Shown: positions 11,848 to 57,680 of the stretch, one piece after another
Position numbering within the stretch: position 1 is the stretch's first letter
How the letters are laid out: each line of letters starts with the position of its first letter
Origin: Phaeosaccion multiseriatum
Taxonomy: Eukaryota; Protista; Ochrophyta, other classes
Assembly: GCA_965112735.1 (NCBI GenBank)
Contig: OZ218950.1
Span: 5,952,001 to 6,016,000, forward strand
Length of the DNA: 64,000 nt
Direction: 5' to 3'
Notes under the pieces: model-generated
The model's database searches: none
Told to the model about the DNA's origin: nothing
The model's input: only the letters and a program-made list of their open reading frames with translations
Made by a program: the position numbers and the translations under genes

Positions 11848-13179
11848 ATGAGTGATACCTGCGGAGCGCGGGCCTTGAGTACTGTGGCCAGCCTTTTCCC
11901 GACACTCAAAGCTCTGTGGGGATTGTGCAAGGAGATGGACAAGCTCACGTGCCGCACTCTGGTCCTTAGGGCCGACATGCCTCGTGATGTCAAGAGGCGC
12001 ATGCTTAGAATGCTGAAGGAGCAGCAGCAGAAAGAGGAGGAGAAGCACCATACTGCATCTTCGTCTTCTTGGTCGGGGACTAGGTCTGCAGCTGCTGCAG
12101 ATCAGGATGCGCTCGAAAGGCGGGGGAAGCGGGCAAAGGGAAGGGCACGGCGCCAGCTGCCCGAGAGCTCACAGCGCAGAGAGACTGGGCCGGGAAAGGA
12201 GAGGCGCTCATTTTGCGTGACCGCCGTGCGTCTCGGCGCCCAGAATGGACGCGGCCGTTCTGCCCCTAAAAAGGCTCTCGTTGTCAAAGTGTTGTCCATC
12301 TTGCCACGGTCCGCGAAGCGTGTGCTCTTCTCTGACGCTTTCAATCAGTCTGATGTGATCCTGCCGAGCTCGCTGGAGGAGGTGACATTCGGGAAGGAGT
12401 TTAACAGACCCATCGCTTTCCCTCCCTCGCTGAGGAAGCTTACTTTTGCTGAGAAGTCGCGGTTCAATCAGCCTGATGTGTTGTTGCCGAGCTCGCTAGA
12501 GGAGTTGACATTCGGGAGGGACTTTAACAGACCCGTCGCTCTCCCTCCCTCGCTGAGGAAGCTTACTTTTGCTGAGAACTCGCAGTTCAATCAGCCTGAT
12601 GTGATCCTGCCGAGCTCGCTGGAGGAGGTGACACTCGGGTGGCGTTTTCACAGACCCATTGCGTTTCCTCCCTCGCTGAGGAAGCTTACTTTTGCGAAGG
12701 GCTCGCTGTTCAATCAGCCTGATGTGATCCTGCCGAGCTCGCTGGAGGAGGTGGAATTCGGGAGGGACTTTAACAGACCCGTCGCTTTCCCTCCCTCGCT
12801 GAGGAAGCTCACTTTCTGCTTGGGTTCGGCGTTCAATCAGCCTGATGTGATCCTGCCGAGCTCGCTGGACGAGGTGACATTCGGGAGGGACTTTAACAGA
12901 CCCGTCGCTTTCCCTCCCTCGCTGAGGAGGCTTACCTTCGGCAGGTATTCGGCGTTCAATCAGCAGTTGATGCTTCCTTGTGGTGTGGAGGAGGTGGTGA
13001 TGGGGCTCGGCTTTGGGCAGCCCTTGCAGCTCCCTGCGTCTCTGCGGAGGCTGACACTGGGTTGGGGGTACACCTGTCCATTGACGGACCTGCCTGCTGG
13101 CCTCCAGTATCTCAAGGTTAGCAGGTATCTCCCGCTGCCCGCAGATCTGCCGGAGGGGCTCCGTGTAGAGTACTTTTGA
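11848..13179 (+). CDS. FNIP-repeat protein A (5 units), intronless, F-box-like N-terminus
   Basis: ATG MSDTCG at 11848. Repeat FNQPDVILPSSLEEVTFGxxFNRPIAFPPSLRKLTFxxxSx, then a conserved C-terminal cap. Confidence 0.92.
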   Translation: MSDTCGARALSTVASLFPTLKALWGLCKEMDKLTCRTLVLRADMPRDVKRRMLRMLKEQQQKEEEKHHTASSSSWSGTRSAAAADQDALERRGKRAKGRARRQLPESSQRRETGPGKERRSFCVTAVRLGAQNGRGRSAPKKALVVKVLSILPRSAKRVLFSDAFNQSDVILPSSLEEVTFGKEFNRPIAFPPSLRKLTFAEKSRFNQPDVLLPSSLEELTFGRDFNRPVALPPSLRKLTFAENSQFNQPDVILPSSLEEVTLGWRFHRPIAFPPSLRKLTFAKGSLFNQPDVILPSSLEEVEFGRDFNRPVAFPPSLRKLTFCLGSAFNQPDVILPSSLDEVTFGRDFNRPVAFPPSLRRLTFGRYSAFNQQLMLPCGVEEVVMGLGFGQPLQLPASLRRLTLGWGYTCPLTDLPAGLQYLKVSRYLPLPADLPEGLRVEYF

Positions 13180-13675
13180 CACAGAAAGCTCTCCCGTTTT
13201 CCCGAGCCTTGCGAAGGAATCAGAAGCGGGGCAGAGTTGCGAAGGAATCAGACGCCCTCTGCAAGCCAGGAGGAGGAGAGGAGGCCCCATCCAGGTGTGT
13301 GCCAAGAGAGGCTGGTGTGCGGAGTGGCGGGGTCTGTGTAGGTGCAGTATAGGCAGGAGCTTGGGCTTGCACTCGCTCGCTGTGGGCGGTGGTGGTCAGC
13401 GGAGTCGGAGTCAGGCCTGCTATAAACCCCCTTCCTCTGAACTGACTCATTTCGCTGTTGCTATCCCTGCTTGCCTGCCGCTTAGGTGGGAAGAAAGCGA
13501 CCTGTCCGCCACCGGAGAAGAGGGCAGAAGGGGTCGAGACTCCGAAGAGGAGGAGCGGTAGGCGGAGGAAGTGTCGATCGCTTCGCGAGGAAGGAAGGGG
13601 TCAGGGAGGCAGGGAGGAAGGACAGAGAGGGAGGGAACGACAGTGGGGGGCGGTTCGGAGTCAGAGCAATGATGG

Positions 13676-13724
<49 letters not shown>

Positions 13725-13956
13725 ATGATGGCACGCCACTGAGATGGGAGGCAGGCACCGCTGAAGCCTAGGCACTGAGGAGAAGGAGGAGGAGGAGCAG
13801 AAGCGGTAGATGCAGCCCTCTACAGGTATGAGTCCCTGCTCTCTTTGTGTCTCTCTCTCGTCGCCGGCCCCTTTTGGCTCAGTTCGCTCACGGCAATCAC
13901 GCTCGTCATTGGAATGTCATGATTGGAAACACTCTTCCCTCCCCCCCTTATTTTTG

Positions 13957-15220
13957 GAACGACTCGCCCTTCTAGTGGAGGAGACGGCGAAGGCCCTAAT
14001 CGACGTGTCAAGGCTTGGTGTGGAGCCGCCAGACAAGGTCAGCGGTGTAGGCACGCGGGGCTGAGGGCAGGCGGGCGGGCACGGCCGGGTAGAGGTGTAT
14101 GGGGAGGGGAGGGCAGGGCAGGGCAGGGTAGAGGTGTATGGGCAGGGCAAGACAGGGTGGAGGTGTATGGGCAGGGCAAGACAGGGCAGAGGTGTATGGG
14201 CAGGGCAGAGTAGAGGTGTATGGGCGGGGCAGGGTAGAGGTGTATGGGCAGGGTAGAGGTGTATGGGCAGGGCAGGGTAGAGGTGTATGGGCAGAGCAGG
14301 CAGGGCTGCAGGGACTGGGTGCAGGGATATGAGCGGGGTGGGGGCGCCGAGGGAGATTTTCGAGCCAGGCTTTTGTTCGATATCCTCTGCCCCACTCAAA
14401 CCCACCTACCCTTCTGCCCCACCCCAACCCACCCACCCGCCCACCCATTGACATACTTCACCCACCCACCCACCCCCCTTGCCTCAGATGGAGATCCTTG
14501 CCCAGCGGGAGAAGCTGCTGAGGCAGTGCGACGGCTTCAAGACGCACGCCGCCCACCTGGAGCAGTTCTTCAACCCACACATGCCCCCCAGTGACGGTGC
14601 GTGGCGGGTTGCTGTGCTTCTTTTCTCTGTTTGGCGCGTTGGTTCGGTGATTAGTTCATTGATTTGAGTTTCCAGCGTCTGTCCCTGCTGGATCGGCAGG
14701 AGGGGGTCGCCACCCCTCACGCCGTCTTTGGCATAGTTGGGAGGATGGGAGGGCAGCAGAGGGGAGAGCTCCGTCTCGGTTTGAGTTTCCGCTTTCTCGT
14801 CCTTGACAGCCCTCTCTTGAAGCTGGGGAGGGGGAGTGCTTCCTGAGGTTCGGTGAAGCGCGACGTGAGAAGGCGTAGAAGTGTTTTTCGTTTGTCGGTT
14901 CATGCCTTACTTCCCTGCTGCTATCCTGTATATTCTTCTAACAAATCCCCCCCTCCCCTCCCCTCCCCTCTTTGGGTGCTGGGTGAAAATGAACCCCTTT
15001 CCACAATTCCCTCCTCCCTCCAAACCCAAAAGACTGTGTGGGCAACGTAGACGGGCTGCTGGAGACCCTGTCCAGAGGGCCGGCCATCCCCCTGTCTGGA
15101 CAGGAGCAGTCCATGGAGCGGTGGGGCTTGGGCGTCATTGACCATCTGCGGGGAGCGGCAAGGATCGAGGAGGAGCAGGGCGGAGTAGGGATTGTATGTC
15201 ACATGCAGCAAATCCAGTGA
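13957..15220 (+). pseudogene. Orphan copy of PX gene exons 4-6
   Basis: Near-identical to 10070-11333 but lacks exons 1-3. The exon-4 acceptor AG is mutated (TTTTTG|GAAC). Confidence 0.8.
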
Positions 15221-15618
15221 GTGAGTGAGTGAGTGAGTGAGTGAGTGAGTGAGTGAGTGAGTGAGTGAGTGAGTGACCAGGGGGAGCGAGCGAACGAGCA
15301 AGCTACAAGCCTCGGTGCAGTTTTGATTGTGTTCTTCTTCATTAAAATTAAAATACATTTGATCTCTCATTTGCTTCCGGGGGCTCAGGCGTGAGAGTAA
15401 GGGAGCAGGAGGCGGGGGGGAGAAGAAGGGGGCCAACGCCAAGCAGCAACGCGCACTTGGCTCCCCAAGCGGGAAATCCAATCTTTGAGGGTTGGTGCAC
15501 CGCGCTGGCTCACAGGTTTCTTGGGTGATGTCTAATAAGTCAATAAATACTCCTCCGGCTTGGTTCCTCTCCACTTTCTCTGCTTTATCATTTCGAGACT
15601 CATCATCCTTGGAGAAGC

Positions 15619-18060
15619 ATGAGTGATACCTGCGGAGCGCGGGCCTTGAGTACTGTGGCCAGCCTTTTCCCGACACACATGGCCCTGTGGGGAGTGTGCA
15701 AGGAGGTGGACAAGCTCACGTGCCGCACTCTGGTCCTTAGGGCCGACATGCCTGGTGATGTCAAGAGGCGCATGCTTAGCATGCTGGAGGAGCAGCAGCA
15801 GAAAGACGAGGAGAAGCACCATATTGCATCTTCATCTTCTTGGTCGGGGACTAGGCCTGCTGCTGCCGCAGATCAGGATGCGCTCGAAAGGGGGGGGAAG
15901 CGGGCAAAGGGAAGGGCACAGCGCGAGCTGCCCGAGAGCTCACAGCGCGATGAGACTGGGCCGGGAAAGGAGAGGCGCTCATTTTGCGTGACCGCCGTGC
16001 GTCTCGGCGCCCAGAATGGACGCGGCCCTCCTGCCCCTGAAGAGGCTCTCGTTGTCAAAGTGTTGTCCATGTTGCCACGGTCGGTGAAGGGTGTGCTCTT
16101 CTCTGAGGCTTTCAATCAGTCTGATGTGTTGTTGCCGAGCTCGCTGGAGGAGGTGACATTCGGGAAGCGTTTTAACAGACCCATTGCTTTCCCTCCCTCG
16201 CTGAGGAAGCTTACTTTTGCTGAGAACTCGCGGTTCAATCAGCCTGATGTGTTGTTGCCGAGCTCGCTGGAGGAGATGACATTCGGGAAGGACTTTAACA
16301 GACCCATCGCTTTTCCTCCCTCGCTGAGGAAGCTTACTTTTGCTGAGAACTCGCTGTTCAATCAGCCTGATGTGTTGCTGCCGAGCTCGCTAGAGGAGGT
16401 GACGTTCGGGAGGTACTTTGACAGACCCATCGCGTTCCCTCCCTCGCTGAGGAAGCTTACTTTCTCCAATCTCTCGCGGTTCCATCAGCCTGATGTGTTG
16501 TTGCCGAGCTCGCTGGAGGAGGTGTCATTCGGGGAGTACTTTAACAGACCCATCGCTTTCCCTCCCTCGCTGAGGAAGCTTACTTTTGATGTGTACTCGG
16601 AGTTCAATCAGCCTGATGTGTTGTTGCCTAGCTCGCTGGAGGAGATGACATTCGGGAAGGACTTTAACAGACCCATCGCTTTCCCTCCCTCGCTGAGGAA
16701 GCTTACTTTTGATGCGGCGTTCAATCAGCCTGATGTGATCCTGCCGAGCGCGCTGGAGGAGGTGACATTCGGGAGGCACTTTAAGAGACCCATCGCTTTC
16801 CCTCCCTCGTTGAGGAAGCTTACTTTTGCTGGGGATTATTCGCAGTTCAATCAGCCTGATGTGATCCTGCCGAGCTCGCTGGAGGAGGTGACTTTCGGGG
16901 AGCGCTTTAACAGACCCATCGCTTTCCCTCCCTCGCTGAGGAAGCTTACTTTCCACTGGAATTCGAAGTTCAACCAGCCTGATGTGATCCTGCCGAGCTC
17001 GCTGGAGGAGGTGACATTCGGGAAGGACTTTAACAGACCCATCGCTTTCCCTCCCTCGCTGAGGAAGCTTACTTTTGATTCACAATCGTGGTTCAATCAG
17101 CCTGATGTGATCCTGCCGAGCTCGCTGGAGGAGGTGACGTTCGGGGAGTACTTTAACGGACCCATTGCTTTCCCCCCCTCGCTGAGGAAGCTTATTTTCC
17201 ACTGGGGTTCGCCGTTCAATCAGCCTGATGTGTTGTTGCCGAGCTCGCTGGAGGAGGTGACATTCGGGAGTGACTTGAACAGAGCCATCGCTTTCCCTCC
17301 CTCGCTGAGGAAGCTTACTTTTGCTGGGGATTATTCGCAGTTCAATCAGCCTGATGTGATCCTGCCGAGCTCGCTGGAGGAGGTGTCTTTCGGGGAGCGC
17401 TTTAGCAGACCCATCGCTTTCCCTCCCTCGCTGAGGAAGCTTACTTTCCACTGGAATTCGAAGTTCAACCAGCCTGATGTGATCCTGCCGAGCTCGCTGG
17501 AGGAGGTGACATTCGGGAGGCACTTTAACAGACCCATCGCTTTCCCTCCCTCGCTGAGGAAGCTTACTTTTGCTGGGGATTATTCGCAGTTCAACCAGCC
17601 TGATGTGATCCTGCCGAGCTCGCTGGAGGAGGTGACTTTCGGGGAGCGCTTTAGCAGACCCATCGCTTTCCCTCCCTCGCTGAGGAAGCTTACTTTCCAC
17701 TGGAATTCGAAGTTCAACCAGCCTGATGTGATCCTGCCGAGCTCGCTGGAGGAGGTGACATTCGGGAAGTACTTTAACAGACCCATCGCTTTCCCTCCCT
17801 CGCTGAGGAAGCTTACTTTTGATGGGTACTCGGCGTTCAATCAGCAGTTGATTCTTCCTTGTGGTGTGGAGGAGGTGGTGATGGGGCCCGACTTTAATCA
17901 TCCCTTGCAGCTCCCTGCGTCTCTGCGGAGGCTGACGCTGGGATTTAGATACACCTGTCCATTGACGGACCTGCCTGCTGGCCTCCAGTATCTCAAGGTT
18001 GAGAGGCAGTGCCCGCTGCCCGCAGATCTGCCCGAGGGGCTCAGGGTGGAGTACTTGTGA
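15619..18060 (+). CDS. FNIP-repeat protein B (14 units), intronless
   Basis: 813-aa ORF with the same N-terminus, framework and cap. Internal triplication of the AGDYSQ/ER/HWNSK block. Confidence 0.93.
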   Translation: MSDTCGARALSTVASLFPTHMALWGVCKEVDKLTCRTLVLRADMPGDVKRRMLSMLEEQQQKDEEKHHIASSSSWSGTRPAAAADQDALERGGKRAKGRAQRELPESSQRDETGPGKERRSFCVTAVRLGAQNGRGPPAPEEALVVKVLSMLPRSVKGVLFSEAFNQSDVLLPSSLEEVTFGKRFNRPIAFPPSLRKLTFAENSRFNQPDVLLPSSLEEMTFGKDFNRPIAFPPSLRKLTFAENSLFNQPDVLLPSSLEEVTFGRYFDRPIAFPPSLRKLTFSNLSRFHQPDVLLPSSLEEVSFGEYFNRPIAFPPSLRKLTFDVYSEFNQPDVLLPSSLEEMTFGKDFNRPIAFPPSLRKLTFDAAFNQPDVILPSALEEVTFGRHFKRPIAFPPSLRKLTFAGDYSQFNQPDVILPSSLEEVTFGERFNRPIAFPPSLRKLTFHWNSKFNQPDVILPSSLEEVTFGKDFNRPIAFPPSLRKLTFDSQSWFNQPDVILPSSLEEVTFGEYFNGPIAFPPSLRKLIFHWGSPFNQPDVLLPSSLEEVTFGSDLNRAIAFPPSLRKLTFAGDYSQFNQPDVILPSSLEEVSFGERFSRPIAFPPSLRKLTFHWNSKFNQPDVILPSSLEEVTFGRHFNRPIAFPPSLRKLTFAGDYSQFNQPDVILPSSLEEVTFGERFSRPIAFPPSLRKLTFHWNSKFNQPDVILPSSLEEVTFGKYFNRPIAFPPSLRKLTFDGYSAFNQQLILPCGVEEVVMGPDFNHPLQLPASLRRLTLGFRYTCPLTDLPAGLQYLKVERQCPLPADLPEGLRVEYL

Positions 18061-18575
18061 CACAGAAGCTCTCCCGTTTTCCCGAGCCTTGCGAAGGAAT
18101 CAGAAGCGGGGCAGAGTTGCGAAGGAATCAGACGCCCTCTGCAAGCCAGGAGAAGGAGAGGAGGCCCCATCCAGGTGTGTGCCAAGAGAGGCTGGTGTGC
18201 GGAGTGGCGGGGTCTGTGTAGGTACAGTGTAGGCAGGAGCTTGGGCTTGCACTCACTCGCTGTGGGCGGTGGTGGTCAGCGGAGTCGGAGTCAGGCCTGC
18301 TGAATGCAACCCCCTTCCTCTGAACTGACTAATTTCGCTGTTGCTCTCCCTGCTTGCCTGCCGTTTAGGTGGGAGGAAAGCGGCCTGTCTACCACGGGAG
18401 AAGAGGGCAGAAGGGGTCGAGACTCCAAAGAGGAGGAGCGGTAGGTGGAGGAAGTGTCGACGCTTCGCCGGGAAGGAAGGGGGCAGGGAGGCAGGGAGGA
18501 AGGACAGAAGGAAGGAAGGAAGGAAGGAAGGAAGGAAGGAGGGAACGAGAGGGGCGGCGGTTCTGAGTCAGGGCA

Positions 18576-18626
<51 letters not shown>

Positions 18627-18848
18627 ATGGCACGCCACTGAGACGGGAGCAGGCGCCGCCGAAGCTTAGGCAATGAGGAGAAGGAGGAGCAGAAGCGGTA
18701 GATGCAGCCCGCTACAGGTATGAGTCCCTGCTCTCTTTGTGTCTCTCTCTCGTCGCCGGCCACTTTTGGCTCAGTTCGCTCACGGCAATCACGCTCGTCA
18801 TTGGAATGTCATGATTGGAAACGCTCTTCCCCCCCCCCCCTATTTTAG

Positions 18849-20034
18849 GAACGACTCGCCCTTCTAGTGGAGGAGACGGCGAAGGCCCTAATCGACGTGT
18901 CAAGGCTTGGTGTGGAGCCGCCAGACAAGGTCAGCGGTGTAGACACGCGGGGCTGAGGGCAGGCGGGCGGTCGCGACAGGGTAGAGGTGTATGGGGAGGG
19001 CAGGGTAGAGGTGTATGGGCAGGGCAGGGTGGAGGTGTATGGGCAGAGCAGAGCAGAGCAGAGGTGTATGGGCAGGGAAGGGTAGAGGTGTATGGGCAGA
19101 GCAGGGCAGGGTGGAGGTGTAGGGATATGGGCGGGGTGGGGGCGCCGAGGGAGATTTTCGAGCCATTCTTTTGTTCGATATCCTCTGCCCCACTCAAACC
19201 CACCTACCCTTCTGCCCCACCCCAACCCACCCACCCGCCCACCCATTGACATACTTCACCCACCCACCCACCCACCCACCCACCCACCCCCCTTGCCTCA
19301 GATGGAGATCCTTGCCCAGCGGGAGAAGCTGCTGAGGCAGTGCGACGGTTTCAAGACGCACGCCGCCCACCTGGAGCAGTTCTTCAACCCACACATGCCC
19401 CCCAGTGACGGTGCGTGGCGGGTTGCTGTGCTTCGCTTCTCTGTTTAGCGCGTTGGTTCGGTGATTGGTTCATTGATTTGAGTTTCCAGCGTCTGTCCCT
19501 GCTTGATCGGCAGGAGGGGGTCGCCGCCCCTCACGCCGTCTTTGGCATAGTTGGGAGAATGGGAGGGCAGCAGAGGGGAGAGCCCCGTCTCGGTTTGAGT
19601 TTCCGCTTTCTCGTCCTTGACAGCCCTCTCTTGAAGCTGGGGAGGGGGAGTGCTTCCTGAGGTTCGGTGAAGCGCGACGCGAGAAGGCGTAGAAGTGTTT
19701 TTCGTTTGTCGGCTCATGCCTTACTTCCCTGCTGCTATCCTGTATATTCTTCTAACACATCCCCCCCTCCCCTCCCCTCCTCTCTTTGGGTGTTGCGTGA
19801 AAATGAACCCCTTTCCACAATTCCCTCCTCCCTCCAAACCCAAAAGACTGTGTGGGCAACGTAGACGGGCTGCTGGAGACCCTGTCCAGAGGGCCGGCCA
19901 TCCCCCTGTCTGGACAGGAGCAGTCCATGGAGCGGTGGGGCTTGGGCGTCATTGACCATCTGCGGGGAGCGGCAAGGATCGAGGAGGAGCAGGGCGGAGT
20001 AGGGATTGTATGTCACATGCAGCAAATCCAGTGA
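18849..20034 (+). pseudogene. Orphan copy of PX gene exons 4-6
   Basis: Near-identical to 10070-11333, with no upstream PX exons. Confidence 0.8.
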
Positions 20035-20315
20035 GTGAGTGAGTGAGTGAGTGAGTGAGTGAGTGAGTGAGTGAGTGAGTGAGTGACCAGGGGGAGCGAG
20101 CGAACGAGCAAGCTACAGGCCTCGGTGCAGGTTTGATTGTGTTCTTCTTCATTAAAATTAAAATACATTTGATCTCTCATTTGCTTCCGGGGGCTCAGGC
20201 GTGAGAGTAAGGGAGCAGGAGGCGGGGGCGAGAAGAAGGGGGCCAACGCCAAGCAGCAACGCGCACTTGCCCCCCCACGCGGGACATCCAATCTTTGGTT
20301 TTTTTCATTTAGGTG

Positions 20316-20356: not shown

Positions 20357-20452
20357 TGGTGTCTATTAAGTAAAAAAATACTCCTCCGGCTTGGTTCCTC
20401 TCCACTTTCTTTGCTTTATCATTACATCGAGACTCATCATCCTTGGAGAAGC

Positions 20453-22525
20453 ATGAGTGATACCTGCGGAGCGCGGGCCTTGAGTACTGTGGCCAGTCTT
20501 TTCCCGACACACAAGGCCCTGTGGGGAGTGTGCAAGGAGGTGGACAAGCTCACGTGCCGCACTCTGGTCCTTAGCGCCGACATGCCTGGTGATGTCAAGA
20601 GGCGCATGCTTAGCATGCTGGAGGAGCAGCAGCAGAAAGACGAGGAGAAGCACCATACTGCATCTTCATCTTCTTGGTCGGGGACTAGGCCTGCTGCTGC
20701 CGCAGATCAGGATGCGCTCGAAAGGGGGGGGAAGCGGGCAAAGGGAAGAGCACAGCGCCAGCTGCCCGAGAGCTCACAGCGCGATGAGACTGGGCCGGGG
20801 AATGAGAGGCGCTCATTTTGCGTGATCGCCGTGCGTCTCGGCGCCCAGAGTGGACGCGGCCCTCCTGCCCCTGAAGAGGCTCTCGTTGTCAACGTGTTGT
20901 CCATGTTGCCACGGTCGGTGAAGGGTGTGCTCTTCTCTGAGGCTTTCAATCAGTCTGATGTGTTATTGCCGAGCTCGCTGGAGGAGGTGACATTCGGGAG
21001 GGACTTTGACAGACCCATTGCTTTCCCTCCCTCGCTGAGGAAGCTTACTTTTGCCGAGGACTCGCTGTTCAATCAGCCTGATGTGTTGTTGCCGAGCTCG
21101 CTGGAGGAGGTGACATTCGGGAGGTACTTTGACAGATCCATCGCTTTTCCTCCCTTGCTGAGGAAGCTTACTTTCAGCTCGTTTTCGGCGTTCAATCAGC
21201 CTAGTGTGATCCTGCCGAGCTCGCTGGAGGAGGTGACATTCGGGAGGTACTTTAACAGACCCATCACTTTCCCTCCCTCGCTGAGGAAGCTCACTTTCCT
21301 CTCTACCTCACAGTTCAATCAGCCTGATGTGTTGTTGCCGAGCTCGCTGGAGGAGGTGAAATTCTGGTGTCATTTCAACAGACCCATCGCTTTCCCTCCC
21401 TCGCTGAGGAAGCTTATTTTCCACTGGGATTCGGCGTTCAATCAGCCTGATGTGTTGTTGCCGAGCTCGCTGGAGGAGGTGACATTCGGGAGGTTCTTTG
21501 ACAGACCCATCGCTTTCCCTCCCTCGCTGAGGAAGCTTACTTTCTTCTCTACCTCAGTGTTCAATCAGCCTGATGTGATCCTGCCGAGCTCGCTGGAGAA
21601 GGTGACATTCGGGAGGGACTTTGACAGACCGATCGCTTTCCCTCCCTCGCTGAGGAAGCTTACTTTCTACTTCAATTCGGCGTTCAATCAGCCTGATGTG
21701 ATCCTGCCGAGCGCGCTGGAGGAGGTGACATTCGGGAAGGACTTTAACAGACCCATCGCTTTCCCTCCATCTCTGAGGAAGCTTACTTTCTCCGATATCT
21801 CGCGGTTCAATCAGCCTGACGTGTTGTTGCCGAGCTCGCTGGAGGAGGTGACGTTCGGGCAGTACTTTAACAGACCCGTCGCTTTCCCTCCCTCGCTGAG
21901 GAAGCTTACTTTCAGCTTGTTTTCGGTGTTCAATCAGTCTGATGTGATCCTGCCGAGCTCGCTGGAGGAGGTGACATTCGGGAGGGCCTTTGACAGACCC
22001 ATCGCTTTCCCTCCCTCGCTGAGGAAGCTTAGTTTCTCCTATCCCTCGCAGTTCAATCAGCCTGATGTGATCCTGCCGAGCTCGCTGGAGGAGGTGACAT
22101 TCGGGAGGTACTTTAACAGACCCGTCGCTTTCCCTCCCTCGCTGAGGAAGCTCACTTTCTGCTTGGGTTCGGCGTTCAATCAGCCTGACGTGTTGTTGCC
22201 GAGCTCGCTGGAGGAGGTGACATTCGGGAGGGACTTTAACAGACCCGTCGCTTTCCCTCCCTCGCTGAGGAGGCTTACCTTCGGCAGGTATTCGGCGTTC
22301 AATCAGCAGTTGATTCTTCCTTGTGGTGTGGAGGAGGTGGTGATGGGGCCCGGCTTTGAGCAGCCCTTGCAGCTCCCTGCGTCTCTGCGGAGACTGACGC
22401 TGGGAAAGAGGTACACCTGTCCATTGACGGACCTACCTGCTGGCCTCCAGTATCTCAAGGTTGAGAGGCAGTGCCCGCTGCCCGCAGATCTGCCCGAGGG
22501 GCTCAGGGTGGAGTACTATTCTTGA
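20453..22525 (+). CDS. FNIP-repeat protein C (11 units), intronless
   Basis: ATG at 20453 (conserved MSDTCG), 690 aa. Confidence 0.93.
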   Translation: MSDTCGARALSTVASLFPTHKALWGVCKEVDKLTCRTLVLSADMPGDVKRRMLSMLEEQQQKDEEKHHTASSSSWSGTRPAAAADQDALERGGKRAKGRAQRQLPESSQRDETGPGNERRSFCVIAVRLGAQSGRGPPAPEEALVVNVLSMLPRSVKGVLFSEAFNQSDVLLPSSLEEVTFGRDFDRPIAFPPSLRKLTFAEDSLFNQPDVLLPSSLEEVTFGRYFDRSIAFPPLLRKLTFSSFSAFNQPSVILPSSLEEVTFGRYFNRPITFPPSLRKLTFLSTSQFNQPDVLLPSSLEEVKFWCHFNRPIAFPPSLRKLIFHWDSAFNQPDVLLPSSLEEVTFGRFFDRPIAFPPSLRKLTFFSTSVFNQPDVILPSSLEKVTFGRDFDRPIAFPPSLRKLTFYFNSAFNQPDVILPSALEEVTFGKDFNRPIAFPPSLRKLTFSDISRFNQPDVLLPSSLEEVTFGQYFNRPVAFPPSLRKLTFSLFSVFNQSDVILPSSLEEVTFGRAFDRPIAFPPSLRKLSFSYPSQFNQPDVILPSSLEEVTFGRYFNRPVAFPPSLRKLTFCLGSAFNQPDVLLPSSLEEVTFGRDFNRPVAFPPSLRRLTFGRYSAFNQQLILPCGVEEVVMGPGFEQPLQLPASLRRLTLGKRYTCPLTDLPAGLQYLKVERQCPLPADLPEGLRVEYYS

Positions 22526-27317: not shown

Positions 27318-27364
<47 letters not shown>

Positions 27365-30042: not shown

Positions 30043-30121
<79 letters not shown>

Positions 30122-38188: not shown

Positions 38189-38234
<46 letters not shown>

Positions 38235-39164: not shown

Positions 39165-39195
<31 letters not shown>

Positions 39196-45436: not shown

Positions 45437-48400
45437 CTGCCTGCCTTCGCCCGAGTGGTGGTCATCGGAGCGGGATCGAGTGGCCTGGCAGCCGCAGCGG
45501 TACTGTCGGAAGGCTTCCAGACACAGAGACGGAGCCGTGATGGCGAGAACAAGAAGCGACCTCGGTCCGTCAAAGGCACCGTTAGTAACCCACCTTCTAC
45601 TGATGGTGAGTAGCGAGGCACGACGAGGGAGAGGAGACATTGGATGGGTGGGTGGGTCGGTGGGTGAGTTGACGGATGGATGGATGGATGGACTGATGGA
45701 CTGACTGATCATTGGCAAGCTAGCCTGGTCATCATTGTGGCAAAGCTCTGGTGGACTGGCTGTCGGGCCATCCATCCACCTATCCACCCATCCAACCAGA
45801 CCAATAGAGTCTTACCGCCCCCGCACCGGTCGTCCGATCACATGCTCAGAACTTCTGTACTTTTTCGTACTTGCTGTTGCTGTTGGTGTTGCTGCTACTA
45901 TTGCTGTTGCTGTGATTCTACCCCATGTGGTGGGGTACACGATCGATGCCCTACCCGACTTACCGACATCGATCATCGATTATGGGCTGAATGTAACACC
46001 TACCAAAATCCAACGCCACCCAACGGTGCGCAGTGTTGGTAGTGGAGGCAAGTAGCTCTCTGGGCGGCACTTGGACTCGCCAATACGAGGGGCTCCATAT
46101 CACCACCCGGCGAAGGTACTGCTCCCTGCCGCTGTACCCCATTCCGCAGGACGGTGGTTATCCGGAGGAGGTGCTCACAGCTGGCGATTATGTGACGTAT
46201 CTCCGAGCCTATGCGGCCCGCTTCGCTCTCGACGTTCGGACGGGGGTGGAGGTGACCACTTGCTGCCGTACCGCAACAGCAGCAGCAGCAGGAGGAGGAG
46301 GAGGAGGAGGAGGAGGAGGAGGAGGAGGAGGAGGAGGAGGAAGGGGGGGGGATGACAATGGATGCAAGAACGGAGGGTGGCGGATGGAAGGAGAAGAAGA
46401 CGGAACAAGGCGCGGAGCGCTCGTGGTGATGACCTCGACCGGGCAGCGCATTCGGTGCGACCATGTAGTCATTGCCTCAGGTAGGTCGAGGTCTGTGCAT
46501 GTGTGTGTATGTGTGTGTGTGTGCGTGCGTGTGTATGTGTGTATGTCTGTATGTACGGTGCTTGTACTTGTGTGTGTGCGTGTGTGTTTTCTCCCCTCTG
46601 ATTCCCCCTCTCGTCTCCCCATACCAATCCACTGCCATCCCCCCCCCCCCCCCATCCACTGCCATAGGCAAGCATCAAGAGCCCTTCCTGCCCCCCGAGC
46701 TTCTCTCTCGGACGCTGCGCTCCTTCGCAGGCCCTGTGCTTCACTCCTCGCAGGTACCGTACTTTCGCATCGGTCCTCATCCACTCCCATCTAGAGGCAG
46801 AGAGAGAGAGAGAGTCCTCATCCACTGCCATCTAGATGCAGAGAGAGAGAGAGAGCGTTGCTAGTGCAGAGGACCGCAGCGGGGATTTTTGCACGCTTGC
46901 CCCTGTGCAGTTGGTGTGTGTGAGTGTGTGTGTGAGTGTGTGTGTAAGTAAGTAAGTGTTTGTGTGTGTATAAGTAGGTAAGTGTGTGTGTAAGTGTGTG
47001 TGTGTGCGCGCGCGTGAAGGGAGAGGGCGGGCGAATGAGGCTCTTCCCTCCTCACCCCCCCCTCCCTCGTACGTGCGTGTACATGTACGTGTGCGGCTGA
47101 CTCAGGTGACTGACTTGGCTGGCCTGGCCCTTCGAAGGGTGTGCATAGTGGGCTTCGGCAACAGCGCAGTGGACATCGCCACCGACCTCGCAGGGAGAGG
47201 CTGCCCGCAGGTACCGTTCTTACTTTCAACCTACCCTGCCCTGCCCATGCACCTCAATCCTACTCTTACTATGCCTCTCCTGCCCTGCCCATACACCTCT
47301 ACCCTGCCCTGCCCTGCCCATACACCTCTACTCTGCCCTGCCCATACACCTCTACCCTACCCCTGCCGATACACCTCTACCCTGCCCTGCCCATACACCT
47401 CTACCCTGCTCTGCCCATACACCTCTGCCCTGCTCTGCCCTGTCCATAAACCTCTACCCTGCTCTGCCCATACACCTCTGCCCTACTCTGCCCTGCCCAT
47501 ACACCTCTACCCTGCCCTGCCCATCACCTCTACCCTGCCCTGCCCTGCCCATACACCTCTACTCTGCCCTGCCCATACACCTCTACCCTACCCCTGCCCA
47601 TACACCTCTACCCTGCCCTGCCCATACACCTCTACCCTGCTCTGCCCATACACCTCTGCCCTGCTCTGCCCTGTCCATAAACCTCTACCCTGCTCTGCCC
47701 ATACACCTCTGCCCTGCTCTGCCCTGCCCATACACCTCTACCCTGCCCTGCCCATACACCTCTACCCTGCCCTGCCCATACACCTCTACTCTACCCTGCA
47801 GGTGGTGCTCAGCACCCGCTCCGTCCCCCCCATCATCTGCCGACAGTGGGGCTTCCTCTCCATCGAGCGTGTCAGCCTCCTCTTGGGGCAGTTCCTCCCT
47901 GCTGGGGTGGCAGACGCCATCCTGGAGGCGGTGGGGCGCCTTCGCTGGGGTGAGTGAGTGAGCGGCTCGCAAGGAAAACTAGCGTAGTGTAGAGGGGGTG
48001 GGTTGGTGGGTTGATGGGTGGATGGATTGGGTGGGTTGTTGGGTTGGGGTCAGGTTGATGGGTGGGCCGATCTTTGGGCGAGTAGGGCTGGGCTGGGCTG
48101 GTGTGGGCTGGGCCTTAGGGCTTCCTCTGCCGCATGCGGCGGAGTAGTGTCGCACGTCGCCACTGACACGCACACACACACATTATCGACAACACACACG
48201 CACATACACAAACACACACACACGCACACACACACGCACACACACACGCACACACACACACACGCCATGCATTGCCCTGTGCGCTTGCGCCTTGCGACGC
48301 GCTGCTGCCCTGCAGGAAGGCGGTGGAAGGAAGACGGATCCATCTTCCCCAGGTGTCTGCTGCAAGGAGAGGCAAGCAGCAGCAGTCATATGGGCAGCAG

Positions 48401-51354: not shown

Positions 51355-51483
51355 GTTGGTGCACCGCGCTGGTTCACAGGTTTCTGGTGATGTCTATTAA
51401 GTCAATAAGACCCCTCGCGACTTGGTTCCTCTCCACTTTCTTTGCTTTATCATTACATCGAGACTCATCATCCTTGGAGAAGC

Positions 51484-53559
51484 ATGAGTGATACCTGCGG
51501 AGCGCGGGCCTTGAGTACTGTGGCCAGCCTTTTCCCGACACTCAAGGCCCTGTGGGGAGTGTGCAAGGAGGTGGACAAGCTCACGTGCCGCACTCTGGTC
51601 CTTAGCGCCGACATGCCTGGTGATGTCAAGAGGCGCATGCTTAGCATGCTGGAGGAGCAGCAGCAGAAAGACGAGGAGAAGCACCATACTGCATCTTCGT
51701 CTTCTTGGTCGGGGACTAGGGCTGCTGTTACTGCAGATCAGGATGCGCTCGAAAGGCGGGGGAAGCGGGCAAAGGGAAGGGCACAGCGCCAGCTGCCCGA
51801 GAGCTCACAGCGCAGAGAGACTAGGCGGGGAAAGGAGAGGCGCTCATTTTGCGTGACCGCCGTGCGTCTCGGCGCCCAGAGTCGACGCGACCCTTCTGCC
51901 CCTGGAAAGGCTGTCGTTGTCAAAGTGTTGTCCATGTTGCCACGGTCGGTGAAGGGTGTGCTCTTCTCTCACACTTTCAATCAGCCTCATATGATCCTGC
52001 CGGGCTCGCTGGAGGAGTTGACATTCGGGAGGGACTTTAACAGACCCATCGCTTTCCCTCCCTCGCTGAGGAAGCTTACTTTCTGCTCGGAATCGGCGTT
52101 CAATCAGCCTGATGTGATCCTGCCGAGCTCGCTGGAGGAGGTGACATTCGGGAGGAACTTTGACAGACCCGTCGCTTTCCCTCCCTCGCTGAGGAAGCTT
52201 ACTTTCTACGGGGGTTCGACGTTCAATCAGCCTGATGCGATCCTGCCGAGCTCGCTGGAGGAGGTGACATTCGGGGAGCGCTTTAACAGACCCATCGCTT
52301 TCCCTCCCTCGCTGAGGAAGCTTACTTTCTGCTCGGAATCGGCGTTCAATCAGCCTGATGTGTTGTTGCCGAGCTCGCTGGAGGAGGTGACATTCGGGGA
52401 GCGCTTTAACAGACCCATCGCTTTCCCTCCCTCGCTGAGGAAGCTTATTTTCCACTGGGATTCGGCGTTCAATCAGCCTGATGTGTTGTTGCCGAGCTCG
52501 CTTGAGGAGGTGACATTCGGGAGGTTCTTTGACAGACCCATCGCTTTCCCTCCCTCGCTGAGGAAGCTTACTTTCTTCTCTACCTCAGTGTTGAATCAGC
52601 CTGATGTGATCCTGCCGAGCTCGCTGGAGAAGGTGACATTCGGGAGGGACTTTGACAGACCCATCGCTTTCCCTCCCTCGCTGAGGAAGCTTACTTTCTA
52701 CTTCAATTCGGCGTTCAATCAGCCTGATGTGATCCTGCCGAGCGCGCTGGAGGAGGTGACATTCGGGAAGGACTTTAACAGACCCATCGCTTTCCCTCCC
52801 TCGCTGAGGAAGCTTACTTTCTCCGATATCTCGCGGTTCAATCAGCCTGACGTGTTGTTGCCGAGCTCGCTGGAGGAGGTGACGTTCGGGCAGTACTTTA
52901 ACAGACCCGTCGCTTTCCCTCCCTCGCTGAGGAAGCTTACTTTCAGCTTGTTTTCGGTGTTCAATCAGTCTGATGTGATCCTGCCGAGCTCGCTGGAGGA
53001 GGTGACATTCGGGAGGGCCTTTGACAGACCCATCGCTTTCCCTCCCTCGCTGAGGAAGCTTAGTTTCTCCTATCCCTCGCAGTTCAATCAGCCTGATGTG
53101 ATCCTGCCGAGCTCGCTGGAGGAGGTGACATTCGGGAGGTACTTTAACAGACCCGTCGCTTTCCCTCCCTCGCTGAGGAAGCTCACTTTCTGCTTGGGTT
53201 CGGCGTTCAATCAGCCTGATGTGATCCTGCCGAGCTCGCTGGACGAGGTGACATTCGGGAAGCGTTTTAACAGACCCGTCGCTTTCCCTCCCTCGCTGAG
53301 GAAGCTTGCTTTCAACTGGAATTCGGCGTTCAATCAGCAGTTGATTCTTCCTTGTGGTGTGGAGGAGGTGGTGATGGGGCCCGGCTTCAAGCAGCCCTTG
53401 CAGCTCCCTGCGTCTCTGCGGAGGCTGACGCTGGGAAAGAGGTACACCTGTCCATTGACGGACCTGCCTGCTGGCCTCCAGTATCTCAAGGTTAGCAGGT
53501 ATCTCCCGCTGCCCGCAGATCTGCCGGAGGGGCTCCGCGTGGAGTACAACTATTCTTGA
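51484..53559 (+). CDS. FNIP-repeat protein D (11 units), intronless
   Basis: ATG at 51484, 691 aa. Shares a run of about seven units with gene C. Confidence 0.93.
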   Translation: MSDTCGARALSTVASLFPTLKALWGVCKEVDKLTCRTLVLSADMPGDVKRRMLSMLEEQQQKDEEKHHTASSSSWSGTRAAVTADQDALERRGKRAKGRAQRQLPESSQRRETRRGKERRSFCVTAVRLGAQSRRDPSAPGKAVVVKVLSMLPRSVKGVLFSHTFNQPHMILPGSLEELTFGRDFNRPIAFPPSLRKLTFCSESAFNQPDVILPSSLEEVTFGRNFDRPVAFPPSLRKLTFYGGSTFNQPDAILPSSLEEVTFGERFNRPIAFPPSLRKLTFCSESAFNQPDVLLPSSLEEVTFGERFNRPIAFPPSLRKLIFHWDSAFNQPDVLLPSSLEEVTFGRFFDRPIAFPPSLRKLTFFSTSVLNQPDVILPSSLEKVTFGRDFDRPIAFPPSLRKLTFYFNSAFNQPDVILPSALEEVTFGKDFNRPIAFPPSLRKLTFSDISRFNQPDVLLPSSLEEVTFGQYFNRPVAFPPSLRKLTFSLFSVFNQSDVILPSSLEEVTFGRAFDRPIAFPPSLRKLSFSYPSQFNQPDVILPSSLEEVTFGRYFNRPVAFPPSLRKLTFCLGSAFNQPDVILPSSLDEVTFGKRFNRPVAFPPSLRKLAFNWNSAFNQQLILPCGVEEVVMGPGFKQPLQLPASLRRLTLGKRYTCPLTDLPAGLQYLKVSRYLPLPADLPEGLRVEYNYS

Positions 53560-54051
53560 CATTGAAGCTCTCCCGTTTTCCCGCGCCTTGCGAAGGAATC
53601 AGAAGCGGGGTAGAGTTGCGAAGGAATCAGACGCCCTCTGCAAGCCAGGAGGAGGAGAGGAGGCCCCATCCAGGTGTGTGCCAAGAGAGGCTGGTGTGCG
53701 GAGTGGCGGGGTCTGTGTAGGTACAGTGTAGGCAGGAGCTTGGGCTTGCACTCGCTCGCTCTGGGCGGTGGTGGTCAGCGGAGTCGGAGTCAGGCCTGCT
53801 GAATGCAACCCCCTTCCTCTGAACTGACTCATTTCGCTGTTGCTCTCCCTGCTTGCCTGCCGGTTAGGTGGGAAGAAAGCGGCCTGTCTGCTACCGGAGA
53901 AGAGGGCAGAAGGGGCCGAGACTCCGAAGAGGAGGAGCGGTAGGCGGAGGAAGTGCCGATCGCTTCGCGAGGAAGGAAGGGGGCAGGGAGGCAGGGAGGA
54001 AGGACAGAGAGGGAGGGAACGACAGTGGGGGGGGGGTTCGGAGTCAGAGCA

Positions 54052-54114
<63 letters not shown>

Positions 54115-54351
54115 ATGATGATATGGCACGCCACTGAGACGGGAGGCAGGCACCGCCGAAGCCTAGGCAATGAGGAGAAGAAGGAGGAGGAGCAGAAGCG
54201 GTAGATGCAGCCCGCTACAGGTATGAGTCCCTGCTCTCGTTGTGTCTCTCTCTCGTCGCCGGCCACTTTTGGCTCAGTTCGCTCACGGCAAACACGCTCG
54301 TTATTGGAATGTCATGATTGGAAACGCTCTCTCCCCCCCGCCTTATTCTAG

Positions 54352-55493
54352 GAACGACTCGCCCTTCTAGTGGAGGAGACGGCGAAGGCCCTAATCGACG
54401 TGTCAAGGCTTGGTGTGGAGCCGCCAGACAAGGTCAGCGGTGTAGACACGCGGGGCTGAGGGCAGGCGGGCGGGCACGGCCAGGTAGAGGTGTATGGGGA
54501 GGGGAGGGCAGGGCAGGGCAGGGTAGAGGTGTATGGGCAGAGCAGGGCAGGGTGGAGGTGTATGGGCAGGGGTAGGGCAGGGTGGAGGTGTAGGGATATG
54601 GGCGGGATGGGGGCGCCGAGGGAGATTTTCGAGCCTTTCTTTTGTTCGATATCCTCTGCCCCACTCAAACCCACCTACCCTTCTGCCCCACCCCAACCCA
54701 CCCACCCACCCACCCATTGACATACTTCACCCACCCACCCACCCACCCCCCTTGCCTCAGATGGAGATCCTTGCCCAGCGGGAGAAGCTGCTGAGGCAGT
54801 GCGACGGTTTCAAGACGCACGCCGCCCACCTGGAGCAGTTCTTCAACCCACACATGCCCCCCAGTGACGGTGCGTGGCGGGTTGCTGTGCTTCTTTTCTC
54901 TGTTTGGCGCGTTGGTTCGGTGATTAGTTCATTGATTTGAGTCTCCAGCGTCTGTCCCTGCTGGATCGGCAGGAGGGGGTCGCCACCCCTCACGCCGTCT
55001 TTGGCATAGTTGGGAGGATGGGAGGGCAGCAGAGGGGAGAGCTCCGTCTCGGTTTGAGTTTCCGCTTTCTCGTCCTTGACAGCCCTCTCTTGAAGCTGGG
55101 GAGGGGGAGTGCTTCCTGAGGTTCGGTGAAGCGCGACGTGAGAAGGCGTAGAAGTTTTTTTCGTTTGTCGGTTCATGCCTTACTTCCCTGCTGCTATCCT
55201 GTATATTCTTCTAACAAATCCCCCCCTCCCCTCCCCTCCCCTCTTTGGGTGTTGCGTGAAAATGAACCCCTTTCCACAATTCCCTCCTCCCTCCAAACCC
55301 AAAAGACTGTGTGGGCAACGTAGACGGGCTGCTGGAGACCCTGTCCAGAGGGCCGGCCATCCCCCTGTCTGGACAGGAGCAGTCCATGGAGCGGTGGGGC
55401 TTGGGCGTCATTGACCATCTGCGGGGAGCGGCAAGGATCGAGGAGGAGCAGGGCGGAGTAGGGATTGTATGTCACATGCAGCAAATCCAGTGA
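54352..55493 (+). pseudogene. Orphan copy of PX gene exons 4-6
   Basis: Near-identical to 10070-11333, 44 kb from PX exons 1-3. Confidence 0.8.
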
Positions 55494-55853
55494 GTGAGTG
55501 AGTGAGTGAGTGAGTGGCCAGGGGGAGCGAGCGAACGAGCAACTTTAGGCGTCGGTCCAGTTTTGATTGTGCTCTTCTTCATTAAAATACATTTGATCTC
55601 TCATTTGCTTCCGGGGGCTCAGGCGTGAGAGTAAGAGAGCAGGAGGCGGGGGGGAGAAGAAGGGGGCCAACGCCAAGCAGCAACGCGCACTTGGCCCCCC
55701 ACGCGGGAAATCCAATCTTTGAGGGTTGGTGCACCGCGCTGGTTCACAGGTTTCTGGTGATGTCTATTAAGTCAATAAGACCCCTCGCGACTTGGTTCCT
55801 CTCCACTTTCTTTGCTTTATCATTACATCGAGACTCATCATCCTTGGAGAAGC

Positions 55854-57680
55854 ATGAGTGATACCTGCGGAGCGCGGGCCTTGAGTACTGTGGCCAGCCT
55901 TTTCCCGACACACAAGGCCCTGTGGGGAGTGTGCAAGGAGGTGGACAAGCTCACGTGCCGCACTCTGGTCCTTAGCGCCGACATGCCTGGTGATGTCAAG
56001 AGGCGCATGCTTAGCATGCTGGAGGAGCAGCAGCAGAAAGACGAGGAGAAGCACCATACTGCATCTTCTTCTTGGTCGGGGACTAGGCCTGCTGCTGCCG
56101 CAGATCAGGATACGCTGGAAAGGGGGGGGAAGCGGGCAAAGGGAAGGGCACAGCGCCAGCTGCCCGAGAGCTCACAGCGCGATGAGACTGGGCCGGGGAA
56201 TGAGAGGCGCTTATTTTGCGTGATCGCCGTGCGTCTCGGCGCCCGGAGTCGATGCGGCCGTTCTGCCCCTGAAGAGGCTCTCGTTGTCAAAGTGTTGTCC
56301 ATGTTGCCACGGTCCGCGAAGCGTGTGCTCTTCTCTGAGGCTTTCAATCAGTCTGATGTGATCCTGCCGAGCTCGCTGGAGGAGGTGACATTCGGGAGTG
56401 ACTTTGACAGACCCATCGCTTTCCCTCCCTCGCTGAGGAAGCTTACTTTCGACTTGTATTCGGCGTTCAATCAGCCTGATGTGATCCTGCCGAGCGCGCT
56501 GGAGGAGGTGACATTCGGGAAGGACTTTAACAGACCCATCGTTTTCCCTCCCTCGCTGAGGAAGCTTACTTTTGCTGAGGGCTCGCTGTTCAATCAGCCT
56601 GATGTGATCCTGCCGGGCTCGCTGGAGGAGGTGACATTCTGGAAGTGTTTTAACAGACCCATCGCTTTCCCTCCATCGCTGAGGAAGCTTACTTTTGCTG
56701 TGGGCTCGCCGTTCAATGAACCTGATGTGATCCTGCCGAGCTCGCTGGAGGAGGTGGGATTCGGGAAGTGTTTTAACAGACCCATCGCTTTCCCTCCCTC
56801 GCTGAGGAAGCTTACTTTTAAAGCGGACTCGCGGTTCAATCAGTCTGATGTTATCCTGCCGAGCTCGCTGGAGGAGTTGACATTCGGGGAGGACTTTAAC
56901 AGACCCATCGCTTTCCCTGCCTCGCTGAGGAAGCTCACTTTTTACGAGTACTCGCAGTTCAATCAGCCTGACGTGTTGTTGCCGAGCTCGCTGGAGGAGG
57001 TGACATTCGGGAGTGACTTTGACAGACCCATCGCTTTCCCTCCCTCGCTGAGGAAGCTTATTTTCCACTGGGATTCAGCGTTCAATCAGCCTGATGTGTT
57101 GTTGCCGAGCTCGCTGGAGGAGGTGACATTCGGGAAGGACTTTAACAAACCCGTCGCTTTCCCTCCCTCGCTGAGGAAGCTTACTTTCTGCTTCAATTCG
57201 GCGTTCAATCAGCCTGATGTGTTGTTGCCGAGCTCGCTGGAGGAGGTGACATTCGGGCGGCGCTTCAACAGACCCATCGCTTTCCCTCCCTCGCTGAGGA
57301 AGCTTACTTTCGACTTGGACTCGGCGTTCAATCAGCCTGATGTGTTGTTGCCGAGCTCGCTGGAGGAGGTGACATTCGGGAAGCGTTTTAACAGACCCAT
57401 CGCTTTCCCTCCCTCGCTGAGGAAGCTTGCTTTCAGCTGGAATTCGGCGTTCAATCAGCAGTTGATTCTTCCTTGTGGTGTGGAGGAGGTGTTGATGGGG
57501 GGCGGCTTTAATCATCCCTTGCAGCTCCCTGCGTCTCTGCGGAGGCTGACGCTGGTAGAGAGCTACACCTGTCCATTGACGGACCTGCCTGCTGGCCTCC
57601 AGTATCTCGAGGTTAGCAGGTATCTCCCGCTGCCCGCAGATCTGCCGGAGGGGCTCCGCGTGGAGTACAACTATTCTTGA
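55854..57680 (+). CDS. FNIP-repeat protein E (9 units), intronless
   Basis: ATG at 55854, 608 aa. Confidence 0.93.
   Translation: MSDTCGARALSTVASLFPTHKALWGVCKEVDKLTCRTLVLSADMPGDVKRRMLSMLEEQQQKDEEKHHTASSSWSGTRPAAAADQDTLERGGKRAKGRAQRQLPESSQRDETGPGNERRLFCVIAVRLGARSRCGRSAPEEALVVKVLSMLPRSAKRVLFSEAFNQSDVILPSSLEEVTFGSDFDRPIAFPPSLRKLTFDLYSAFNQPDVILPSALEEVTFGKDFNRPIVFPPSLRKLTFAEGSLFNQPDVILPGSLEEVTFWKCFNRPIAFPPSLRKLTFAVGSPFNEPDVILPSSLEEVGFGKCFNRPIAFPPSLRKLTFKADSRFNQSDVILPSSLEELTFGEDFNRPIAFPASLRKLTFYEYSQFNQPDVLLPSSLEEVTFGSDFDRPIAFPPSLRKLIFHWDSAFNQPDVLLPSSLEEVTFGKDFNKPVAFPPSLRKLTFCFNSAFNQPDVLLPSSLEEVTFGRRFNRPIAFPPSLRKLTFDLDSAFNQPDVLLPSSLEEVTFGKRFNRPIAFPPSLRKLAFSWNSAFNQQLILPCGVEEVLMGGGFNHPLQLPASLRRLTLVESYTCPLTDLPAGLQYLEVSRYLPLPADLPEGLRVEYNYS

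Follow-up and report, generated by a model that had tools for sequence, protein, structure and literature searches.

FGxxFN leucine-rich repeat (LRR) proteins are the described system closest to the five genes (A-E) analysed here, which lie in a stretch of 64,000 nt from Phaeosaccion multiseriatum (GenBank assembly GCA_965112735.1, contig OZ218950.1, positions 5,952,001 to 6,016,000, forward strand). This whole stretch is called the 64-kb window below. In FGxxFN proteins, variability peaks at the two residues that separate FG from FN, which are situated at the edge of the solenoid's concave face (PMC9525666). In the crystals of CroV588 and CroV539 these most variable residues are positions 8-9 of the repeat, and neighbouring repeats bring them together into contiguous patches (Huyton et al. 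2022, PMC9525666). The same authors compared the class with the VLRs of lamprey and hagfish, suggesting that FGxxFN families may recognise many ligands while being "not quite as diverse" as VLRs. Thus the idea that the variable FGxxFN positions form a recognition repertoire, together with the VLR comparison, is already published for this protein class (PMC9525666). The HIC ("high internal conservation") repeats of fungal NLRs, namely the WD repeats of Podospora nwd/het-d/het-e and the ANK and TPR repeats, offer a second comparison: they show concerted evolution within and between paralogs, vary in repeat number, and are under positive selection at a few residues per repeat, which map to the binding surface (Paoletti 2007, PMC1805685; Dyrka 2014, PMC4986451). 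Our analysis makes it likely that A-E are a lineage-specific tandem FNIP/FGxxFN LRR cluster, with a fixed scaffold that recombines and with strand-following loops under diversifying selection. Since this pattern has already been described for FGxxFN LRRs and HIC repeats, the value of the cluster is that of a clean, quantified cellular example, not of a new principle.

The five genes are intact, intronless open reading frames (ORFs) on the forward strand, each encoding an FNIP-type LRR protein (Table 1). They are arranged as A-B-C, followed by a gap of 29 kb and then by D-E. All five proteins matched Pfam FNIP (PF05725) with 138-307 bits against a cut-off of 21 (E 1e-40 to 1e-93). By splitting the proteins at the FNQP motif we delimited 50 repeat units (5, 14, 11, 11 and 9 in A to E), which as a rule measure 123 bp or 41 aa. 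The exceptions, three units of 42 aa (126 bp) and one of 39 aa (117 bp), are all in gene B, so that no length change shifts the reading frame. When a 23-nt pattern of the framework was searched with up to 3 mismatches, it matched exactly the 50 units in the 64-kb window, all of them inside A-E (0 expected by chance). The five arrays were also recovered by TRF, with the same consensus as quoted in the preliminary description of this DNA, whose counts of genes and units were all reproduced by the ORFs, the FNQP split and TRF. The DNA of the 64-kb window is eukaryote-like, with a GC content of about 58% and abundant micro- and minisatellites. The GC content at third codon positions was 0.69-0.72 in A-E versus 0.57-0.61 in neighbouring ORFs. 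The satellites in the flanks of A-E are those of the remaining window, and no sign of a recent viral insertion was seen within the 64 kb.

The comparison with FGxxFN LRRs extends to the Pfam match, the fold, apparently the double-Phe/Asn motif, the near-identical repeats within each protein and the large families (PMC9525666). Unlike the CroV proteins, A-E are cellular, chromosomal tandem genes rather than giant-virus genes, and their N-terminal domain is an orphan. The repeats also depart from the class: the turns have 20 and 21 residues rather than 22, the x positions on the concave face are invariant, and every second turn carries a loop of 5-6 residues, x-x-x-S-x, that is rare in 40 database relatives examined. 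The xx positions of those relatives show the highest variability as well (2.5-3.2 bits), and their loop nearly always has three residues. Among 5.8 billion proteins the highest identity was 38%, and the matches were FNIP proteins of Symbiodiniaceae, brown algae and dictyostelids as well as unnamed metagenomic sequences; no close relatives were found in IMG/VR or in JGI metagenome contigs. With respect to HIC-type evolution, A-E show an amino-acid identity of 0.79 between whole units, exchange between paralogs, 5-14 units per gene and a ratio of nonsynonymous to synonymous differences (pN/pS) of 1.47 in the variable parts. Unlike the fungal NLRs, their repeat type is an LRR, which was not found in fungal NLRs by PMC1805685 or PMC4986451, they contain no NACHT/NB-ARC or known N-terminal effector domain according to Pfam, and the organism is no fungus.

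Each 41-aa unit consists of two LRR turns, of 20 and 21 residues. The first turn reads F-N-Q-P-D-V-(I/L)-L-P-S-S-L-E-E-V-T-F and is followed by G-x-x, and the second reads F-N-R-P-I-A-F-P-P-S-L-R-K-L-T-F and is followed by x-x-x-S-x. The motif L-E-E-V-T-F-G-x-x-F-N occurs in turn 1 of 48 of the 50 units; turn 2 retains F...F-N, with x-x-x-S-x in place of G-x-x. Beyond its last regular unit, each array continues with a degenerate unit and then a few LRR-like turns that form a cap; this C-terminal cap also matches Pfam FNIP. Variation is concentrated in 6-7 loop residues per unit, at codons 19-20 (window 1) and at codons 37, 38, (39), 40 and 42 (window 2), where codon 39 is an occasional extra codon and Ser41 is fixed inside window 2. 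The column entropy was 2.1-3.4 bits at codons 19, 20, 37, 38, 40 and 42, and 0-0.97 elsewhere, except for codon 22 with 1.28 (an N/D dimorphism). Because each window is the loop that follows a beta-strand, in alternate turns, the two can be regarded as one structural element. Window 2 alone has 34 distinct haplotypes among the 50 units.

D, R, K, E, Y, W and H are over-represented in the windows, where 17% of the residues are aromatic and 39% charged; neighbouring ORFs have 5% and 27%, respectively. The alphabet is restricted in every column, with R/K/E predominating at codon 19, for instance, and D/R/Y at codon 20. No stop or frameshift was found in the windows of any unit. Column entropy, the codon scan and the residue counts thus agree with what the preliminary description had read from the letters, namely two hypervariable windows that are rich in aromatic and charged residues and free of stops and frameshifts. 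The framework itself contains a few dimorphic sites that recur in all genes: P/S4, I/L7 (with a linked Leu8 codon), N/D22, I/V25, T/I35, and TTT/TTC at codon 36. The Phe36 codon tracks the first base of window 2, being TTT in 15 of the 19 units in which the next codon starts with G (for example at 12445-12447) and in 2 of the 31 others. We considered CpG decay as the source of this dimorphism and rejected it: the TTC-GGG CpG at codons 17-18 is kept in 48 of 50 units, and codon 36 is therefore better read as linked to window-2 types.

To quantify selection, Nei-Gojobori counts were made over all pairs of units, and the ratios were bootstrapped over units. The pairwise nucleotide identity between units was 0.933 for the framework and 0.481 for the windows; the corresponding amino-acid identities were 0.90 and 0.17. 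In the framework, pS was 0.110 and pN 0.052, and in the windows pS was 0.377 and pN 0.550. The window pN/pS of 1.47 (1.28-1.72), with no bootstrap replicate at or below 1, is to be taken as approximate because a counting method was applied to near-saturated, recombining units; its direction is the excess of nonsynonymous change that had been predicted for the windows. Relative to framework pS, window pN was 5.0-fold (4.3-6.0) and window pS 3.4-fold. Framework pS is low but not near zero, and the synonymous differences are concentrated in a few recurrent dimorphisms; the description of the framework as nearly identical even at synonymous sites goes too far. In minimum spanning trees of the distinct window codons, 6 synonymous and 63 nonsynonymous steps were counted (p=0.011, windows combined). 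Diversity within the window codons is roughly twofold higher at positions 1 and 2 than at position 3, which does not vary at all in codon 42. Among the 300 near-saturated window codons there are 0 stops (P = 5.6e-7 for random codons). The pN/pS ratio, the codon-position bias, the absent stops and the restricted alphabets together suggest that selection acts on the encoded residues, and they speak against plain local hypermutation and against drift alone.

The AlphaFold2 model of protein C (mean pLDDT 78, pTM 0.70) is a regular LRR solenoid. According to DSSP, short beta-strands lie at codons 14-17 and 33-36, directly before each window. The best Foldseek match of the model in the PDB was CroV588 (6NYR; E 9.3e-26, TMq 0.62, 31-33% identity), and the second was CroV539 (7ZAL; E 6e-9). 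These matches, together with Pfam FNIP, bear out the earlier assignment of the repeats as FNIP- and LRR-like. Judging from the homology to CroV588 and CroV539, the LRR register and the secondary structure, it appears well founded that both windows correspond to FGxxFN positions 8-9 and would form a single variable stripe on the edge of the concave face. The proposal that the windows line one binding face is thereby supported to the extent that both windows follow strands, as CroV positions 8-9 do. We infer that the stripe is most likely a protein-binding surface. The strand positions on the concave face, codons 13-14 and 32-33, are invariant, with an acidic E-E alternating with a basic R-K in successive turns, unlike in most database relatives, where these positions are variable. 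This fixed alternation suggests salt bridges between turns or a conserved second binding face.

Exchange of units within and between the genes is directly visible. A-E lie in tandem duplicons. In their non-coding 5' flanks, A, B, C and E share 94-98.5% identity, and the unit number of the paralogs ranges from 5 to 14. Units C5-C10 and D5-D10 (Table 1) differ at 5 of 738 nt, whereas outside this tract C and D diverge by 5.5% in the N-terminal region and by about 13% in units 1-3 and 11. Since the tract is so much closer than the rest of the two genes, it is read as an exchange between loci. Eight clustered differences between C4 and D4 had raised micro-conversion or hypermutation as candidates; both were rejected, as the differences sit at the boundary of this tract. 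In gene B, a two-unit block of about 249 bp is present in three copies (B6-7, B10-11 and B12-13; TRF period 249), and B7, B11 and B13 differ by 2 nt. The framework distance between units was 6.87 of 105 nt within genes versus 7.15 between genes, and four gametes were present at most pairs of framework dimorphisms. Distances in windows and framework were nearly uncorrelated (r=0.17), the window distances being near 0 or near saturation with some intermediates. As an extreme case, B8, B12 and B14 have 0 of 105 framework differences and 8-13 window nucleotide differences.

Downstream of each FNIP gene there is one and the same simple-repeat series, consisting of (ATG)n, a G-rich 24-bp minisatellite (GGGCAGGGCAGGGTAGAGGTGTAT-like), two 27-bp C-rich copies and (AGTG)n. 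A copy of the series also stands upstream of gene A, so the duplicon reaches beyond the coding region. A related C-rich minisatellite occurs in reverse orientation at 47231-47799.

The array is preceded by 164 residues. At residues 4-68 a small domain of four helices is predicted (pLDDT 73 when modelled alone), followed by a K/R-rich linker at residues 71-146 that is predicted to be disordered. By inspection, a K/R-rich stretch in the linker resembles a nuclear localisation signal. Pfam at E up to 1 found no domain other than FNIP in the five proteins, and hence none with a signalling function (NOD, TIR, death-fold, kinase or other). A Foldseek search of the dedicated N-terminal model gave nothing at E <1 in the PDB or the Swiss-Prot part of AFDB, and a search of the N-terminal profile against 1.84 billion representatives gave no homologue; its single match, P0100, is a translated tandem repeat and a summation artefact. 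Inspection revealed no signal peptide or membrane segment in A-E, the N-terminus (MSDTCGARALST...) being unlike a signal peptide, and the proteins are therefore probably intracellular.

Taken together, we propose the following for A-E. In each protein the orphan four-helix domain and the disordered basic linker lead into a curved solenoid, which has some 14-32 LRR turns. Variation is confined to the loop after each strand, while the Phe/Asn core and the concave face formed by the beta-strands are kept constant. Units are swapped and duplicated, inside a gene as well as across paralogs, through gene conversion and unequal crossover, a process that is observed here; this would keep the scaffold a mixed pool of low diversity and alter the unit number from 5 to 14. 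Loop variants that change amino acids would be favoured or retained by diversifying selection, as the pN/pS ratio supports, while stops and frameshifts would be purged. Diverged loops probably also end conversion tracts, which may help loop types to stay distinct. Several points weigh against this proposal. Besides the approximate nature of the window ratio, window 1 alone was not significant in the minimum-spanning-tree test (p=0.47). The non-repeat parts gave a pN/pS among paralogs of 1.32 (N-terminus) and 0.98 (C-terminal cap), and values around 1 outside the repeats could mean fast evolution of, or weak constraint on, the genes as a whole. The mapping of the windows to the surface rests on homology and secondary structure, and the Pfam search yielded no second domain that would point to a signalling function.

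If the loops were simply unconstrained and had drifted to saturation, with conversion and purifying selection keeping the scaffold uniform and with diverged loops blocking the tracts, then the near-absent correlation of window and framework divergence (r=0.17), and window distances mostly close to 0 or to saturation, would fit well. The demonstrable activity of gene conversion, the pN/pS around 1 in the N-terminus and C-terminal cap, and the null result for window 1 alone point the same way. Nevertheless, we regard neutral loops as unlikely. The interval of the window pN/pS excludes 1, the combined spanning-tree test is significant, third codon positions vary less than first and second ones, no stop occurs in 300 saturated codons, the residue alphabet is biased and restricted, and Ser41 stays fixed in the midst of window 2. 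A very different source of the same contrast would be programmed diversification, in which the windows are rewritten, somatically or in the germline, by VLR-like cassette copying, by templated mutagenesis as in a diversity-generating retroelement, or by deaminase targeting. Units with identical frameworks and 8-13 window differences, the 3.4-fold synonymous divergence of the windows, and several window codons that vary at positions 1-2 with position 3 fixed could be taken in this sense. Yet we give it almost no credence: each of the five genes has a complete ORF, outside the genes the 64-kb window contains no copy of a unit and no partial cassette, and neither a reverse transcriptase nor a template repeat was found among the 20 ORFs scanned. 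The restricted alphabets and the excess of diversity at positions 1-2 over position 3 fit selection with codon bias, and the identical multi-unit tracts are ordinary homologous exchange. The comparison with VLRs can be judged from the same facts. VLRs are likewise LRR solenoids of modular units, with variable residues on or beside the concave face, but their germline gene is incomplete and is filled in somatically with cassettes from its flanks, and the receptors are secreted or anchored in the membrane. A-E are complete in the germline, show neither a signal peptide nor the Cys cap pattern by inspection, and have all 50 framework matches within the genes; without spare cassettes in the 64-kb window they are therefore not VLR-like in mechanism, and as far as mechanism goes the VLR-type analogy of the preliminary description is not supported.

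The same description had also suggested a TALE-type repeat code. A nucleic-acid reader of that type would recognise one or two bases per unit through the variable residues, and its basic linker would serve as the nuclear localisation signal. Like A-E, TALE repeats and PRDM9 zinc-finger arrays have near-identical repeat DNA, unequal exchange, and variation at 2-3 residues per unit, which in TALE and PRDM9 contact the ligand; the two modular windows per unit and the K/R-rich stretch of the linker, seen by inspection, would agree with this. An hmmsearch of the PDB with the N-terminal profile even listed AvrBs3 (E 9e-10) and Hax3, which proved to be an artefact in which 17 repeats of about 0-1.6 bits each (i-Evalue in thousands) were summed. 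TALE (an alpha-solenoid) and PRDM9 (zinc finger) have other folds, and their nucleic-acid ligands are read by a small code; the 33-35-aa TALE repeat has two helices with an RVD loop, whereas A-E are beta-solenoids of strand/loop LRR turns. With 34 haplotypes in 50 units, window 2 has too many types for a small base-reading code. LRRs are not known to decode a sequence one base at a time, and a reader of this kind is extremely improbable here. F-box-type substrate adaptors would be another intracellular function, with the N-terminal helices as a degenerate F-box that docks Skp1 and the LRR stripe picking proteins for ubiquitylation. The F-box and FNIP proteins of Mimiviridae and Dictyostelium resemble A-E in having a small N-terminal helical region before an FNIP array, the short helices are of about the right size, and F-box fusions have been described for FGxxFN LRRs (PMC9525666). 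The look-alikes of residues 1-164 in a protein language model were giant-virus 'F-box and FNIP repeat' clusters (0.85-0.90), which we treat as a lead only. By contrast, no F-box was detected by Pfam even at E up to 1, the comparison by hhalign of the N-terminal profile with a motif-bearing alignment of the N-termini of brown-alga-type FNIP proteins gave a probability of 0.2%, no F-box protein was listed by Foldseek, and the search of 1.84 billion representatives was negative as well, which makes adaptors of this type highly unlikely. A dedicated anti-pathogen or antiviral repertoire of innate immune receptors, germline-encoded, unit-shuffled and with a function comparable to that of VLRs or of the repeat domains in NLRs of fungi and plants, would account for an evolutionary syndrome that matches the HIC-repeat NLRs controlling non-self recognition in fungi (PMC1805685, PMC4986451) and for a loop composition typical of binding sites. 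FGxxFN proteins are, moreover, prominent in giant-virus and virophage systems (PMC9525666, PMC10945749). On the other side, Pfam finds no signalling domain (NOD, TIR, death-fold, kinase or any other), inspection shows neither a secretion signal nor a membrane anchor, and the best-studied FGxxFN proteins are viral rather than host-defence proteins (PMC9525666). We consider this explanation unlikely.

For the cluster with a recombining scaffold and selected loops, which we prefer, a target engaged in an arms race, for example a virus, a parasite or non-self, would be plausible, while an immune or receptor role of A-E is speculative. A uniform LRR scaffold, exchange of units between loci and selected hypervariable loops make up the signature that distinguished the allorecognition NLRs of fungi and further arms-race receptors. 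Little is known about innate recognition in protists; A-E carry this signature and therefore provide a concrete candidate family, and an orphan N-terminal domain, for study. A bolder extension, which we consider rather improbable, is that the FNIP family, with this cluster as one of its loci, is a germline-encoded, recombination-shuffled intracellular recognition repertoire of a protist, an LRR counterpart of the fungal HIC-repeat NLRs, with a new orphan N-terminal signalling domain and directed against giant viruses, virophages or other parasites.

Table 1. Genes, exchange tracts and other features of the 64-kb window (positions counted from its first nucleotide)
Feature	Position	Strand	Remarks
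Gene A	11848..13179	+	443 aa; 5 units at 12340-12954; Pfam FNIP E 1.1e-40
Gene A, N-terminal orphan domain and linker	11848-12339	+	from ORF translation and unit coordinates
Gene A, degenerate C-terminal cap	12955-13179	+	from ORF translation and unit coordinates
Gene B	15619..18060	+	813 aa; 14 units at 16111-17835; Pfam FNIP E 1.4e-93
Gene C	20453..22525	+	690 aa; 11 units at 20945-22297; Pfam FNIP E 4.3e-71
Gene D	51484..53559	+	691 aa; 11 units at 51976-53328; Pfam FNIP E 2.4e-75
Gene E	55854..57680	+	608 aa; 9 units at 56343-57449; Pfam FNIP E 2.8e-59
Units C5-C10	21437..22174	+	one side of the inter-locus conversion/exchange tract; tract starts at about codon 21 of unit 4
Units D5-D10	52468..53205	+	partner of the C5-C10 tract, 31 kb away
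Simple-repeat series after FNIP genes	13669-15276, 18576-20086, 54052-54707		
Simple-repeat series, copy upstream of gene A	10163-11391		
G-rich tandem repeat	1026-1585		60-bp (and 38/98-bp) period; inside a 511-aa ORF at 261-1796 (-), no Pfam match
ORF piece with ferric-reductase-like transmembrane domain	6451-7440	-	PF01794, E 1e-10
Ankyrin-repeat protein, intronless	23502-24965	-	487 aa; Ank_2 E 3e-64; about 1 kb downstream of gene C
Uninterrupted ORF	34543-39783	-	1746 aa; no Pfam match at E up to 1; located between sub-clusters A-B-C and D-E

Among the neighbouring features, a word-based homologue search with the ferric-reductase-like ORF piece gave no match, probably since the piece is one exon only. 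Antisense ORFs of 202-327 aa overlap the arrays on the reverse strand (12496-13305, 17080-18063, 52585-53562 and 56211-57683); long antisense ORFs are no evidence of genes here, as they are expected by-products of a repeat unit without stops in that frame.

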